Of a DNA stretch of 64,000 bases, positions 3,639-10,653 are shown piece by piece. The notes beneath the pieces were generated by a model. The model searched no databases. It was not told where the DNA came from and saw only the letters and a program-made list of their open reading frames with translations. The position numbers were made by a program, and so were the translations under genes. The stretch is from Entomortierella parvispora E1425. Taxonomy: Eukaryota > Fungi > Mortierellomycota. The stretch lies in the NCBI GenBank assembly GCA_020891255.1, contig BQFW01000012.1, positions 1,860,001-1,924,000 of the forward strand, in the 5' to 3' direction. Position 1 is the first letter of the stretch. Each line of letters begins with the position of its first letter.

Positions 3639-4817
3639 TCACTCGCGGTCTGGCGTTGGCAGCCTTGGTGGGCGAAAAGTGTCCTCAAAGTCCTCTTCCT
3701 CGATGGCCTCGTCCTTCACTTCAGCTTCATGGTCACTGCCATCGGAATCATCGCTGCTGCTGCTACTTTCAACATCATCCAGATCCGTATCCCAGCCCTC
3801 TTCCCATTCTTCTCCCTCGACTTTTACGCCTCGGCTCTTCCAGTAATCGTGCCCGTATGTGCACAGAATCTCTTCGCCTTTTCGAATCCGCTTCAAGACT
3901 TTGCACCCCATACGAACTTGTCCCGTGTCTGCATCTCGGTAGAGATCCCAGCCAACATTTGGCCCTTGTTCCTGGGTCCTGATTCCGCGGAAATCATTCA
4001 CAAATCGACCGTGATTTCCGTGAACAGAAGCGTCCAGATTGAGGTCGTTGCAGAGATATAGCGTATGATCCGAATCTGGGTCCGCAAACTCGTCTGGGAC
4101 AACGAGCGAGATGTAATCCAAGAGATGCAGACCGGGTCGAAGCGTCTTTAACGCAAAGAGCCCATAGGATCCACAAACTGGATGGTCCGGGGTATCAATA
4201 TAACGAATCTCGTACAACTCTTCGTCTGCTGACCTCTCCCCTTTTGCTGTCACGGTAGTCGAGTTGGCTGTGAACTCAAGTCCTGGAATGGCATGACCCA
4301 TGGGTATTTCGTCGTAATCCTGCTCCTCTTGAGTACGACCGTCGGTCACTCTCAGCGCGCTTTCGCCTTTCTCTTCGTTGTCGTCAGCTTCTTTCTCGAG
4401 GAATCCAATATCAGCGACGTCCCTTCTCATCCCCTGCTCTGCTTTCTTTGGATGACATTCCGTATGTTTTCTTCTTCTACCCAGGACGAGATCCAAGGTT
4501 GATTCAGAGATGGAGGGATGATATTCGTAATCCACGAGATACTTGACATGGGCCGGCCAGTCAGGAGGCAAAAACTTTGGCGAGGAGACGATGGTGGGTG
4601 TTCTTGGCTCTGAATCGGCGACTGTTGCCTGCAATTGCGCTTTGAGCGGGGATAGATCAGGAAAAGCCTCTTCTGACTGCGATGGAAACCCTTTCGCCCG
4701 TTGGTGGCGTTGGTGGCGTTGGTGATCGAGGTTATTGCTCCTACTACTGCTACCGTCGTTGGTGCTGCTATTGTCAGCATGGGAAGGGGGAACTCTCAAG
4801 GGGTCCCTGTGGCTCAT
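3639..4817 (-). CDS. Intronless SET-domain protein (putative lysine methyltransferase) with acidic C-terminal tail, 392 aa
   Basis: SET motifs YGLFA, DASVHGNHGRFVNDFRG and IRKGEEILCTYGHDYW in one uninterrupted ORF. Confidence 0.85.
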   Translation of the reverse strand: MSHRDPLRVPPSHADNSSTNDGSSSRSNNLDHQRHQRHQRAKGFPSQSEEAFPDLSPLKAQLQATVADSEPRTPTIVSSPKFLPPDWPAHVKYLVDYEYHPSISESTLDLVLGRRRKHTECHPKKAEQGMRRDVADIGFLEKEADDNEEKGESALRVTDGRTQEEQDYDEIPMGHAIPGLEFTANSTTVTAKGERSADEELYEIRYIDTPDHPVCGSYGLFALKTLRPGLHLLDYISLVVPDEFADPDSDHTLYLCNDLNLDASVHGNHGRFVNDFRGIRTQEQGPNVGWDLYRDADTGQVRMGCKVLKRIRKGEEILCTYGHDYWKSRGVKVEGEEWEEGWDTDLDDVESSSSSDDSDGSDHEAEVKDEAIEEEDFEDTFRPPRLPTPDRE

Positions 4818-5009
4818 GATGGCGTCTATGTGTGTTTTGGTGGATGGCGATTGAGTATGACTTGAGAGAGAACAACAATCACGTTGAAATGAACGAGATG
4901 AATGGAGTAAAGAAAAAAAAATTGTTGTATTTTTTTGCCACTAAAAAGCTTACTCAGTCACGGCAGTGGCAGTGAATCTTCTCTTTTCCTCACCACCATT
5001 GCATTTACC

Positions 5010-5505
5010 ATGGAAGACCTCAAGAACAAGGTCAGTGCTGCCCCTCAGTGCTAGAGCGAAACGGCTCTGTCGACTTCATTGACCCCTCACTGCACTGGAG
5101 CACTGAATGGACCTTTTTTTTTATTGTTGGAATGAATAGATTCATGAATTGGACATCCTGACCGAGGAACTGGCCTCCTTGAGGCCCACAGCCGTACGTC
5201 GCATCTTTCCACCTTTTTTCACTGTGGCCTTGCAAAGTCTGTTTCTGTATTGCTAGAATGCTCATGCCTTTGGCCATTCTTGCTCTTACTAGGCTGTTTA
5301 CTCAAAGCGGGTTCCTTCTTCCAAACTGTTCTTTCTCGAAGACAAGAGCCAGCTGACCACAAACAAGAAAAGTACGTGAAGGGAAAAAAAATAGTGATGA
5401 CTCCACTGACTGAACAGGATTCTAACTACAGGATTGCATTCACCAGAAGAGCTGGCAGACACAAGGGCGCAGATTGCTGCCATTCCGGGACAAGTCCCCT
5501 CATGA
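5010..5505 (+). CDS. ASDURF-like (ASNSD1 uORF / PAQosome beta-prefoldin-like subunit) microprotein, about 70 aa, 4 exons: 5010-5030, 5140-5193, 5293-5371, 5447-5505
   Basis: Hand-spliced with canonical signals (GTCAGT..ATAG, GTACGT..CTAG, GTACGT..CTAAC..CAG) into a stop-free frame: MEDLKNKIHELDILTEELASLRPTAAVYSKRVPSSKLFFLEDKSQLTTNKKKELADTRAQIAAIPGQVPS*. It aligns without gaps apart from one residue to human ASDURF as I recall it ([41 protein letters not shown]). Confidence 0.78.
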
Positions 5506-5624
5506 AAACCGATACCCTTCAAACTTCAAACTCGCATCCCAACCCTTCCAATCGGATGCCTTCATAGCGAATTTCATAGAACCAGAACAAAGACTCGTTG
5601 CAGTAGAGATCGATTCCTTTAATG

Positions 5625-8600
5625 CTATCCGTATGTGGCCATTGCTGTCGGCATCGTGTGGATATTGACAATAGGAAGGCTGTTGTACGAGAGTCGAGCA
5701 TTATCGATTTGCTCCTTGGTGATCTTTCTCAGCACAAATCCACCAACCAAGGTCGCAGGAGTGTCACCCCTGTAAGCCTCCACTTCTCGGATCCAGTCCA
5801 GAAGGATCTGACCCTCTGAGAAGCCCACCATCACAGACTGGATGTCAATGTCGTCGTCGATGATCCCCTCGCCTATCTGGTTTGACTTTGGAGGCGGTGA
5901 GACCCTCGCGTTTTGGTTTGAAGAGGAGGAGGTATCGGCTGCAAGTTGCTCCGGTCCACCGCCCATAGTAAATGTTTCTTCATCAGAATTAATAATGACG
6001 ACGCTACGGGCACCAGCCACCTGCGCGTAATAAGCCTTGAGAATGAAAAGACACCCTCCACGGTCGACCACTAGAATGTTGTCCCGGATTCTCATGGATT
6101 GAGAGCTGGTATATGGACGACATCCCGACACATTTTCCTTTACACGGACCAACTTTGCAGTGTCGATTTGGCCTTGACTAGTATTGCCCGATGGCGAAGA
6201 TGCAGATGAGGTATCCCTGCCCTCATCTCCGAGTGTGGTTTCAAAGGGATTGGTCAACTGCCTATCTTGAGTGTAATCGACAACAAAGGGCTGCCAGTAT
6301 CCAAACTCGGCTGGTTTGATTGACAGATCTCGCTCTGTAACAGTTGGAGCTGCAGACGGCGCATCGACGCGTCCAATGGCTTTGTATATCCGCAGATGAG
6401 CATCCTGTGACAACTGATACGAGTCCCAGAGCGGTCTCATCGAGGATCGGTCGACGTATACGTTACTGTTCAGACTCAGTGGGTGGTCGGCAACCTTCAC
6501 GGCTCTGTAGGCATTTTGGGTGCCGTCATACTGAAGTTGCATCTGTACACCAACGATTCGATTCACAAACACTCCTTTCTTGATTGGAATCACCACCAAC
6601 TTCTTATTCATGCTCTCTCCCTCCTGTTGCTCTCTCCTTCGCCGGTCCTCTGCGCTCTCTTTGTGGCTGGGCGGTGAAATGGTGTGACCGTGCCCTCCGT
6701 TTCCGAGATATGTCTTCTTGGGTGGCCCTGAGAACTCGACAAGCACCCTCTCCACTTCCAGTGATGGCTTATCGCAGAATCCTTTAGGGTCCAGCTCAAG
6801 CAAGTCTCGAGCGTCCGGTCGCGTTCCAACCATCTGGCGAGCAAAGTCCGCATCCGATCGATAAGGTATACTCTTTAAAAAGGTATCCGGCGCCCTGTAG
6901 ACGGGGCATTGGGGCCAGCGCTGCTTCTTTGTACTGGCGTAGAGTGACGATGGCAGGAGTTCCTTGATCTTCTGCTGACCTCCAGCACTCTTCAGCCGGA
7001 GCTGTTGCTCTGATGACATGGCCATCCATAAGTCCTCGTCAGCCGTCTTCTTATTTTGGTGTCCATTCTGCAAGTATTTTGAACCCAAAGCGAGAACATG
7101 ACCTTCGGTCGTAAAGACGAAGTTTGAGTCCTTTAGCTCCTGGTGCAAAACGTTTTCCTCGTCGAATAACAAGAAAAGGTACTTGAACGTTTCCGATAAC
7201 GCAAAGCTCTCCATTCTATCCTCCAGTTTCTTGTCAATCACACTCTTCAGTGAAGCCCAGCCACACTTGGTCCTGGTGTAGGATTGGAGGTCATGGAGGA
7301 TCATCTCTCCAACCTCGAGATAAAAAGGGTCCTTGGTGGCCTACATATCGCAAAATAGGATGAGTGTTGTTTGTTTTACGCTCTGGACACTCAAAAGTTC
7401 ACTGAGAGTCCTACTTACCCTGTAAAGAAAATAATTGGACTCTATAAACTCGGGTCGCAATGGGTAGTTGGAGATATCAACAGTTTGCGTGACAAAGTTG
7501 AAGCGCTCAGGAATCGCTTGAAACTTGCGCCAAATATTATAATAGTACAAGTGGTTTTTGATCGCGCTCTCCAAGTCACCGCCGAGAACCTACGTTGAAT
7601 GGAAGAGGTGGAAGCGCAGAGGATGAGACAAGTGCGTCTCCTGCTGTTTGGTATCTAGCTTGTAGAATAAAACGTACCTGGACACCAGGCATGAATGCAG
7701 ACAAACTATCCACCCAGGTTGCCAGCAAAGATCCATCGTGGAGATGGACATGTTTGTAAAAGTACTTCGAGTCGTGGAGTAGATGCCTCTTGATAGCATC
7801 CTGCGCCGTCTCGTACATGTCCAAGTATTCGCTATCGCCAAACAAGACATATGACTTCAAGAGATACTCGTAGAATGAATCCGTGCCTGCACCGATTCCG
7901 GTCATTAGTGACATCCACTGAAAAGCATGAAGAAAAATACCAATTAGTTAGTACTTTTTTACAACACCGGCTAAACAACACATATTGAGCTTCTATGGAG
8001 CTTGAGTATTACCTCGCCGCTTGTAATGTTGATGGTGTTTCCTACTAAACCTAGATTAGATCTTCTATTCCACAGCTCAAAAAGCGCTTTCTTGGCCGCG
8101 TTCTATATGGTGTTGACAAAGACCGATGCGGAAAGGCGTAAGTAACAAGATCAACATTATAACTTCAAAACCATAACTCTTTGCAGCTTACCTCAAATGA
8201 TGGATCGCCTGTAAGACGACTCAATACCCCAAACTCCAACAGTAAACTTCCTGCTCCAGCCACACAAGTCTCGGACGACTCTTCCCGCAAAACACCCCTC
8301 CGCAAGTTCACTCGAGGCCAAGGAATTCCTGTTGGCGTATTGTCAAAGGCCTTAATTAACCGCGCGCCAAGGTCTTTGGCCATAGTCAGCAGCTCCCCCT
8401 TATAGCCCTTGACAATAGACTTGAAACTCGGATCACTGGCATAGAGATGCCCCGAAAGCAAAGCGCCGAGAACTCGAATGTTGACTTCAAAGACTTGAAC
8501 ACGACTGTCGATATTGAAGTCAAAGACATGCCTCTTGACCAACTTGATCGCTATCTGGAAGAGCTCTGGTTCCCGCATTGCCGCCAATGTGTCGAGAGCG

Positions 8601-9454
8601 TCAATCAAAGTCAATGAGAAATCTCCAAGGACATCGTTCACATTGATGTTATTGGGATTTCTAGTATCAGGACCACGACCTGTACACGCGACTGGGTTTA
8701 ACTCGTCCTTTGGGAAAGCATAGTTCAGGTAACCCTGATATCCATGCAGGAACATGTCCTTGGCCTCCTGTCGAAGAATCTTTCTACGTGATTCAGTCAT
8801 CCGCTTCGTAACAATCATTCCTGGGGCTTTGGAGACATCGATTATTGGTGGTAGGGTTCGAAAATATTGTCTGCTGTTGACGTCTACACCTCCATGAGAT
8901 CCTCCCCGATGGGCGCTATTCCCACTTCCGCCATTGCTGGATTCTGTATTGGAGACTTGGTCTGATTTTGCGTTTACTCCGTTCGAAGGATGAGGTGATG
9001 AGAGCAGGATTTGGATGAGGGCAAACACGGCAAACATAAGCCAGGATCTCATGGATCCATTGACTCCTGTCCCGGCTCCCGCTCCTGCTGCAGCGCCAGC
9101 TCCATTAGATGATGTTGATCCAAGTAACGAAGTAGCAGGGTTGCCAGGATGATGAGTATCTAGGTCTGTGTTGCTCGCGGACTCTGGGCCGGATATAGAT
9201 GATAACGCAGACTGATGAGGATAACCAGAGGTCCCTCGAACGGCTCCAAGGCGAGGTCCATCGTCGAGGCCGGGGGAGCTATCGCCGGCAGATGAAGAGG
9301 GTATAAGGTCGTCGGTGAATTCGTCCTCGGATGAAAACGAGGATGCAATGAGACACTCGTTGAGGTCAAGGGATGAGTTGCTGTCTCCGTACTCGTCAGC
9401 GCGAGCAAAGTCCCCTGTTCGGCATCCAGACCGGGGTGGCGCCTCTGTGTCCAT
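5625..9454 (-). CDS. EDEM3: EDEM3/Mnl1(Htm1)-type ER degradation-enhancing alpha-mannosidase-like protein (GH47 + PA domain), multi-exon
   Basis: GH47 motifs VFEVNIRVLGALLS, AGAGSLLLEFGVLSRLTGD, GIGAGTDSFYEYLLK, YPLRPEFIES, DRMESFALSETFKY, FTTEGH; PA motif ILVVDRGGCLFILKAYYAQVAGARSVVIIN. Start codon ambiguous (9454 or 9052). Confidence 0.92.
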
Positions 9455-9721: not shown

Positions 9722-10653
9722 ATGTCAGACAGAGTAAGGAACACCCGCTTTCGCCCGTCGTATCGATACTGCCCTAGCTACAGGCCTAGCCGATCACTGG
9801 ACTGGGACAATTGGTCAAGGAAGAACGAAGTCATCCATCCGAAATCAACACGCGCTGAGGCATAGAGCCCGCCACAATCCGAGGAAACAGCCTCCTTCCC
9901 ACTATCCTAGGAGCAATTGAAATCGATCGACACCTTACTGACTCATGGAGAAGAAAGGATGTAGTTCTCATGGAGACCTCAGAGGAATCGGACCAAGATG
10001 TGTTGTCGCTGTAAGGACAGAATATTTAGACCTTTGTTTCTTTATTGCTCATTAGCCAAGAGGCGGATATAACGGACGTGGAGGCGGAGGACGTGGAGGC
10101 GGCAGCGGTGGTCGTGGAGGTGGTCGTGGAGGTGGACGCGGCGGAGCAAACTCTTCACACACAGAGAGACCCAAGAAGGAGTCGATTCTGGATCTTGGAA
10201 AGTACATGGACCAGAAGATCAGAGTCAAATACAGCGGAGGACGTGAAGGTAAGGCGCTCGATGGTATTGGAACCATCTCAGTTCTGCGGCTTGTTGAATA
10301 CTGACCTTTATTTTCCATGATTTTGAATAGTCATTGGCACATTGAAGGGCTACGACCCCTTGTTGAACTTGGTGTTGGACGAGACTGAGGAGTGCTTGAG
10401 AGGTAAGAAAAGAGAGAGCCCAGGAAGATATATCGCGCACCATGGCTGGAAGCTGCACTGTACTTTTTTTTGACCGTATTCAATAACATCTTTCTCTTGA
10501 ATACTAGACCCCGAGGACGGTCGCCTGTTGGATCAAACTCGCACCCTTGGTCTGATTGTCTGCAGAGGCCCTTCAGTCATTCTGATTTCACCAATGGACG
10601 GCACGCTCGAGATTGCCAACCCCTTCATTCAAGAAGAGGAGGCTGTTATTTGA
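9722..10653 (+). CDS. LSM7: U6 snRNA-associated Sm-like protein LSm7 with N-terminal RGG extension; exons about 9722-9733, 10055-10248, 10331-10402, 10508-10653
   Basis: Spliced product MSDRPRGGYNGRGGGG...ERPKKESILDLGKYMDQKIRVKYSGGREVIGTLKGYDPLLNLVLDETEECLRDPEDG...RTLGLIVCRGPSVILISP matches the Lsm7 Sm fold. Confidence 0.93.

Follow-up and report, generated by a model that had tools for sequence, protein, structure and literature searches.

A conserved four-exon gene of Entomortierella parvispora for a predicted beta-prefoldin of the ASDURF family

Prefoldin-like complexes have been described in humans and plants, and the literature searched here treats fungi through budding yeast only. Human ASDURF is a small beta-type subunit proposed to complete an alpha2-beta4 prefoldin-like hexamer with URI1, UXT, PDRG1, PFDN2, and PFDN6. 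In the PAQosome, the human hexamer is combined with R2TP, RPB5, and WDR92. According to one review, the place of ASDURF even in the human complex is unconfirmed. A first-pass annotation of genomic DNA from the fungus Entomortierella parvispora E1425 proposed that a short gap between two larger genes holds a free-standing gene for an ASDURF-like protein. The locus raises three questions: whether the gene is real, whether its product belongs with ASDURF, and what such a protein would do in a fungus. The window analysed is a stretch of 64,000 nucleotides from GenBank assembly GCA_020891255.1 (contig BQFW01000012.1, positions 1,860,001 to 1,924,000 of the forward strand), and coordinates below are those of the window unless another locus is named.

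The locus and its gene model

The gap runs from the start of a SET-domain protein gene (3639-4817, reverse strand, 392 aa) to the stop of an EDEM3-like gene at 5625 and measures 807 bp, in agreement with the roughly 800 bp first given. The SET gene lies head-to-head with the small gene, and the reported 192-bp spacing of their start codons (4818-5009) is confirmed from the coordinates. This shared spacer includes an A/T-rich tract near 4910-4950 and presumably holds a two-way promoter and both 5' leaders. On the other side, the EDEM3-like gene, which encodes GH47 and PA domains (5625-9454, reverse strand), converges on the small gene, with the two stops 119 bp apart. As the first-pass annotation stated, no ASNSD1 ORF follows the small gene; the next gene is this antisense GH47/PA gene. 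Further along the window, positions 9722-10653 on the forward strand encode a GenBank protein of 140 aa without a Pfam match on record.

The small gene occupies positions 5010-5505 of the forward strand and is divided into four exons. Exon 1 (5010-5030, 21 nt) holds the ATG, in an ACCATGG start context, and six further codons. Exon 2 (5140-5193, 54 nt) encodes the base of the predicted N-terminal helix and the turn that leads to the hairpin, and exon 3 (5293-5371, 79 nt) encodes the beta-hairpin, with the VY and FFL motifs of the family, followed by the start of the C-terminal helix. The coding part of exon 4 (5447-5505, 59 nt including the stop at 5503-5505) encodes the C-terminal helix and tail and is the least conserved. 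The introns lie at 5031-5139 (109 nt, phase 0, GTCAGT..AG), 5194-5292 (99 nt, phase 0, GTACGT..AG), and 5372-5446 (75 nt, phase 1, GTACGT..AG), on the same strand. All three begin with GT and end with AG, and two of the three begin with GTACGT. When rebuilt by script, the joined coding sequence is 213 nt long and specifies 70 residues with no internal stop. An exhaustive search of GT/GC..AG models for the GenBank protein yields exactly the exon set 5010-5030/5140-5193/5293-5371/5447-5505. The rebuild and the model search agree on the four small exons, three canonical introns, and stop-free frame of 70 residues that had been read from the window. In the incoming frame, introns 1 and 2 contain two stops each, and intron 3 contains five or none depending on the frame numbering; the gene is therefore unreadable without splicing.

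The first-pass annotation described the exons as invisible to the ORF track, but the gene is not invisible to annotation. Assembly GCA_020891255.1 calls a gene over 496 bp of contig BQFW01000012.1 that corresponds exactly to 5010-5505, and the 70-residue product matches, in 100% of its letters, the GenBank "hypothetical protein EMPS_08949" of E. parvispora, for which this contig is the sole encoding contig.

The acceptor of intron 3 had been placed at either 5431 or 5446, in the same frame. Both are indeed in frame, the alternative AG at 5430-5431 lying 15 nt upstream of the annotated acceptor and adding five residues to give a protein of 75 aa, but the two are not equal. Acceptor 5446 is favoured because the five extra residues, which include a proline, are found in no orthologue, and because the intronless ORF of Podila humilis, which likewise lacks them, is collinear with the 70-residue form. 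A CTAAC branch-point-like motif at 5422-5426 precedes the 5446 AG by 21 nt but the 5431 AG by only 6 nt; the corresponding distances from motif to acceptor in two orthologous introns are 24 and 32 nt. The spacing of 6 nt, compared with 21-32 nt for annotated acceptors, also counts against the 75-residue form as the main product, as does its Pfam score, which is below that of the 70-residue form. Among the three loci compared, the alternative AG is present only in E. parvispora, where use of the 5431 acceptor could yield a minor 75-residue isoform whose helix 2 begins with an insert that contains a proline.

Conservation within the Mortierellaceae follows the exons. A homologue search returned eight further small proteins of 68-71 aa from Linnemannia, Mortierella, Gamsiella, and Podila (E 1e-11 to 1e-18), a later profile search returned additional Podila and Mortierella entries, and orthologues are found in more than 15 Mortierellaceae assemblies. 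In the alignment of nine sequences, the invariant residues lie mostly at 7-43. Linnemannia gamsii and Gamsiella multidivaricata have the same four exons, with exon 2 of 54 nt and exon 3 of 79 nt in both. Compared with these two orthologous loci, exons 1-3 are 68-79% identical at the DNA level, whereas the introns and 200-bp flanks are 42-51% identical, which is background. Synonymous sites are saturated (pS 0.67-0.80), pN is 0.19-0.29, and dN/dS is 0.07-0.22 where dS is computable. Judged from these substitution patterns, the 70-residue protein is under strong purifying selection. The sequencing runs catalogued for positions 4700-5900 include no RNA run, and those for the SET gene are of DNA or unspecified type. 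In a comparison of four runs of unspecified kind, a genomic contig of a relative (less than 90% alike) matches exons 1 and 2 and has a different intron, of 88 nt, between them.

The orthologue of Podila humilis is one uninterrupted ORF of 207 nt that is collinear with the spliced product of the window over all three junctions. This collinearity supports the splicing independently of the habits of gene-calling programs. The four-exon gene at 5010-5505 of the forward strand is real and conserved, with its splicing read from genomic sequence.

The surroundings of the gene are less stable than its exons. The SET and EDEM3-like neighbours are not conserved at the other Mortierellaceae loci examined. 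In L. gamsii, Gamsiella, and Podila minutissima, a gene for V-ATPase subunit G and/or ribosomal protein L3 lies directly upstream of the small gene. This neighbourhood, found in three genera, is the older arrangement, and E. parvispora has the gene elsewhere, between the SET and EDEM3-like genes. The P. minutissima orthologue (L006:4001-4429), which follows RPL3, keeps introns 2 and 3. The intronless copy of P. humilis (L004:5001-5207) lies among unrelated genes (CAP, acetyltransferase) and looks like a retrocopy or the outcome of wholesale intron loss and relocation.

Membership of the ASDURF family

The Pfam family ASNSD1-SEP (PF21975) matches residues 2-57 of the protein with an E value of 1.3e-5 and a score of 25.7 bits, 1.3 bits under the 27-bit gathering cut-off. 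The Prefoldin_2 family matches the same protein more weakly (E 3.6e-3). PF21975 is matched by all nine of the nine Mortierellaceae orthologues at E<=0.01 (best E 3.4e-6), and precomputed matches to it are on record for EMPS_08949 and most of the orthologues.

Profile comparison connects the fungal proteins directly to animal ASDURF. A profile made from the nine Mortierellaceae proteins only was scored against 1.84 billion representative sequences and gave 36 matches at E<=1e-3, nearly all of them proteins of 60-110 residues. Among them are proteins from fish, axolotl, and Lingula that bear the name ASNSD1 upstream ORF protein (E 4e-6 to 8e-4), and its other named matches include Capsaspora (Filasterea) CAOG_04800 and Trichoplax. 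Its fungal matches come from Geosiphon, Gigaspora, Rhizophagus, Funneliformis, Basidiobolus, Absidia, and Mucor. None of the named matches bears the name of a specific canonical subunit (PFD1, 2, 4, or 6), the Capsaspora match having the automatic UniRef label "Prefoldin subunit beta". No Dikarya protein is among the named matches, which is not proof of absence from that group. Aligned by hhalign with eight animal ASDURF sequences, the Mortierellaceae profile gives a probability of 98.1% and an E value of 9.2e-14 over 64 columns. A feature search of the ESM Atlas places two "ASNSD1 uORF protein-like" clusters at the top and a plant cluster with PF21975 and PF01920 third. Searches of the PDB by sequence, whether with the single protein or with the fungal or animal profile, gave chance-level matches only and no ASDURF chain.

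The predicted structure is of the same kind. AlphaFold2 models reach a pLDDT of 79 with the nine-sequence alignment and, with an alignment of 34 sequences, a pLDDT of 89.5 and a pTM of 0.68, with five of five models in agreement. The models give a helix at residues 2-20, strands at about 27-29 and 39-41 that form a beta-hairpin, and a second helix at 43-63, which as a prediction is exactly the helix, hairpin, helix layout proposed from the peptide beforehand. The best match among the AlphaFold models of Swiss-Prot is human ASDURF (L0R819; E 1.6e-3, TM 0.79 by query, rmsd 1.0 A, 32% identity). The next matches are beta-type prefoldins only (PFD6, PFD1, PFD4, and archaeal beta subunits), together with one uncharacterised archaeal protein; their E values are weaker by roughly tenfold or more, and their identity is 15-23%. 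The solved structures most similar to the model are archaeal beta subunits (1FXK, 2ZQM, and 2ZDI) and two human chains of 6NR8, PFD6 and PFD1.

The resemblance to ASDURF that was first noticed in the peptide is thus upheld by the retrieval of animal proteins with the fungal profile, by the hhalign comparison, and by the structural match; the profile check against ASDURF and prefoldin gives an ASNSD1-SEP score just below its gathering cut-off. By these comparisons the protein is homologous to animal ASDURF and is placed as a predicted member of the ASDURF (ASNSD1-SEP) branch of the beta-prefoldins.

Several gene models of other fungi contain the same segment in unusual form. In Mucor ambiguus, a 129-aa model named "60S ribosomal protein L38" (P0065) carries both PF01781 and PF21975 and is probably a gene-calling fusion. 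The small gene of Phycomyces (L008:3253-4469) lies just downstream of that for ribosomal protein L38, as in Mucorales. Absidia cylindrospora has two entries of 71 aa each (P0012 and P0016) that have the first 50 or so residues in common and differ in the C-terminal helix, and these may represent alternative last exons or two annotated isoforms. A Funneliformis geosporum protein of 215 aa (P0035) has an ASDURF-like segment at residues 15-63 and represents a longer variant or else a fused gene model.

Gene architecture across eukaryotes

The positions and phases (0, 0, and 1) of the three introns are identical in E. parvispora, L. gamsii, Gamsiella, Geosiphon (Glomeromycotina), Phycomyces (Mucorales), Capsaspora (Filasterea), and Trichoplax (Placozoa). 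The Trichoplax gene carries an unmarked PF21975 match. The Lingula gene for an "ASNSD1 uORF protein-like" product has introns 2 and 3 in common with the window gene, and its intron 1 is four codons away. Introns have been dispensed with in Podila, where P. minutissima is without intron 1 and P. humilis without all three. Of the eight relatives examined that contain intron 1, all but Lingula (66 nt) have an exon 2 of 54 nt. Since the intron positions and phases are common to fungi, Capsaspora, and Trichoplax, the gene structure predates the split between fungi and animals. This conserved architecture is independent evidence of orthology.

The arrangement as a uORF of ASNSD1 gives the family its name, not its definition, and it is absent at the E. 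parvispora gene. No asparagine-synthase-domain gene adjoins the small gene at four further Mortierellaceae loci or at the Geosiphon, Phycomyces, Capsaspora, Trichoplax, and Lingula loci. At the Trichoplax (L009:8001-9268) and Lingula (L010:10001-11044) loci, no such gene is present within 8-10 kb. Stand-alone genes in Arabidopsis, Capsaspora, Trichoplax, and Lingula indicate that the uORF arrangement is derived, having arisen within animals and not at their base. The first-pass annotation had emphasized ASDURF as an independent gene in this fungal lineage. The gene does stand alone here, but this is not special to it, as the genes of the same four organisms stand alone too and such an arrangement is the ordinary one for the family.

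Proposed role and comparison with known systems

The evidence is, quite likely, best explained by a real, expressed-type nuclear gene for a 70-residue beta-prefoldin of the ASDURF branch that would function in a prefoldin-like complex. Like that of human and Arabidopsis ASDURF, the hairpin of the protein would insert into the double beta-barrel hub of a complex of six subunits. Its partners would be URI1/Bud27 and UXT as alpha-type subunits and PDRG1, PFD2, and PFD6 as beta-type subunits. The complex would dock on the Hsp90 co-chaperone R2TP and may aid the assembly of multi-subunit machines, such as RNA polymerases. Residues 7-43, the most conserved part, comprise the base of helix 1 and the hairpin, through which contacts with other subunits in the beta-barrel hub would be formed; the ends of the helices, short and variable, would then be the "tentacle".

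Such a complex in a fungus is not a given, because reviews describe budding yeast as having Bud27 alone and no prefoldin-like complex beyond it. The protein may instead be a true ASDURF orthologue in a lineage without the full module, where it would act with fewer partners (Bud27/URI1, PFD2, and PFD6) or stand in for PFD1 in variant canonical complexes. A reduced set would resemble the condition of yeast, which keeps Bud27 only and is said to be without UXT and PDRG1, and for animals it has been proposed that ASDURF takes the place of PFDN1 in alternative complexes. However, the protein is strongly constrained and has been kept across three Mucoromycota subphyla and Basidiobolus, and Arabidopsis ASDURF co-purifies with the whole module. 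This reduced-module reading seems unlikely.

It is very improbable that the protein is a shortened paralogue of a canonical beta-prefoldin of the PFD1/PFD6 type that is merely ASDURF-like. The weak Prefoldin_2 match (E 3.6e-3) and a fold that matches PFD6 and PFD1 (TM about 0.77) would suit such a paralogue, but ASNSD1-SEP outscores Prefoldin_2, the fungal profile retrieves ASDURF-named proteins and no named canonical subunit, and the hhalign comparison with animal ASDURF reaches an E value of 9e-14. Identity is likewise 32% to human ASDURF versus 14-24% to canonical subunits, and the three intron positions are common to the ASDURF-like genes of Trichoplax and Capsaspora. A chance gene model or decaying pseudogene, as the very short exons (21-79 nt) and derivation of the model from genomic sequence alone might suggest, is effectively refuted by orthologues in more than 15 Mortierellaceae assemblies, conservation of exons but not introns, pN far below pS, an intact intronless orthologue, and conserved intron phases.

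With the protein taken as an ASDURF-branch subunit of a prefoldin-like complex, a broader proposal can be made, which is about as likely as not. Early-diverging fungi (Mortierellomycotina, Glomeromycotina, Mucoromycotina, and Basidiobolus) may keep the complete plant/animal-type module, which would have been lost in budding yeast and perhaps in all Dikarya. ASDURF would be an ancient, four-exon, stand-alone gene with introns that predate the split between fungi and animals, and its capture as a uORF would be late and internal to animals.

The gene is already annotated, though unnamed, and has a precomputed link to PF21975, so that naming it is useful rather than surprising. A name is given to a "hypothetical protein" that recurs across Mucoromycota. 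No mention of ASDURF in fungi was found in the literature searched; the original ASDURF paper (Cloutier et al. 2020) lay outside that search. The evolutionary point is the retention of the family in Mucoromycota and Basidiobolus, and its significance is modest because plants had already shown both a stand-alone gene and the complex. ASDURF is no curiosity of an animal uORF but a eukaryotic gene of long standing whose exon structure has been conserved. Should the partners prove to be present, conservation of ASDURF in early-diverging fungi would suggest loss of the complex within fungi and not its absence from the outset, and Mortierella-type fungi could serve for studying it. A complete module would provide a tractable fungal system for a complex of poorly understood function.

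Human ASDURF (ASNSD1-SEP, L0R819) belongs to PF21975, the family that the fungal protein matches just under the gathering cut-off, and is 32% identical to it over 59 aligned residues. The two have the same helix, hairpin, helix layout, with an rmsd of 1.0 A between the predicted models, and have in common the motifs that flank the hairpin: E-L..L, then VY, then an NS-IFFL-like segment. They differ in that human ASDURF is 96 residues long with an N-terminal extension of about 24 residues, which the fungal protein is without. In humans, an upstream ORF of the ASNSD1 mRNA encodes ASDURF, whereas the fungal gene lies alone between the SET and EDEM3-like genes. The canonical beta-prefoldins (PFD1, PFD6, and archaeal 1FXK) are of the same fold class (TM by query 0.70-0.79), but at 107-140 residues they have much longer coiled-coil arms, and their identity to the fungal protein is 14-24%.

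Arabidopsis At1g49245 is a stand-alone ASDURF gene, and its product co-purifies (AP-MS) with URI, UXT, PDRG1, PFD2, and PFD6; the plant prefoldin-like complex has the same make-up as the human one. Like the E. parvispora gene, At1g49245 is a small, stand-alone, beta-prefoldin-like gene, a likeness drawn from the literature. Arabidopsis ASDURF is the best model for the probable role of the fungal gene.
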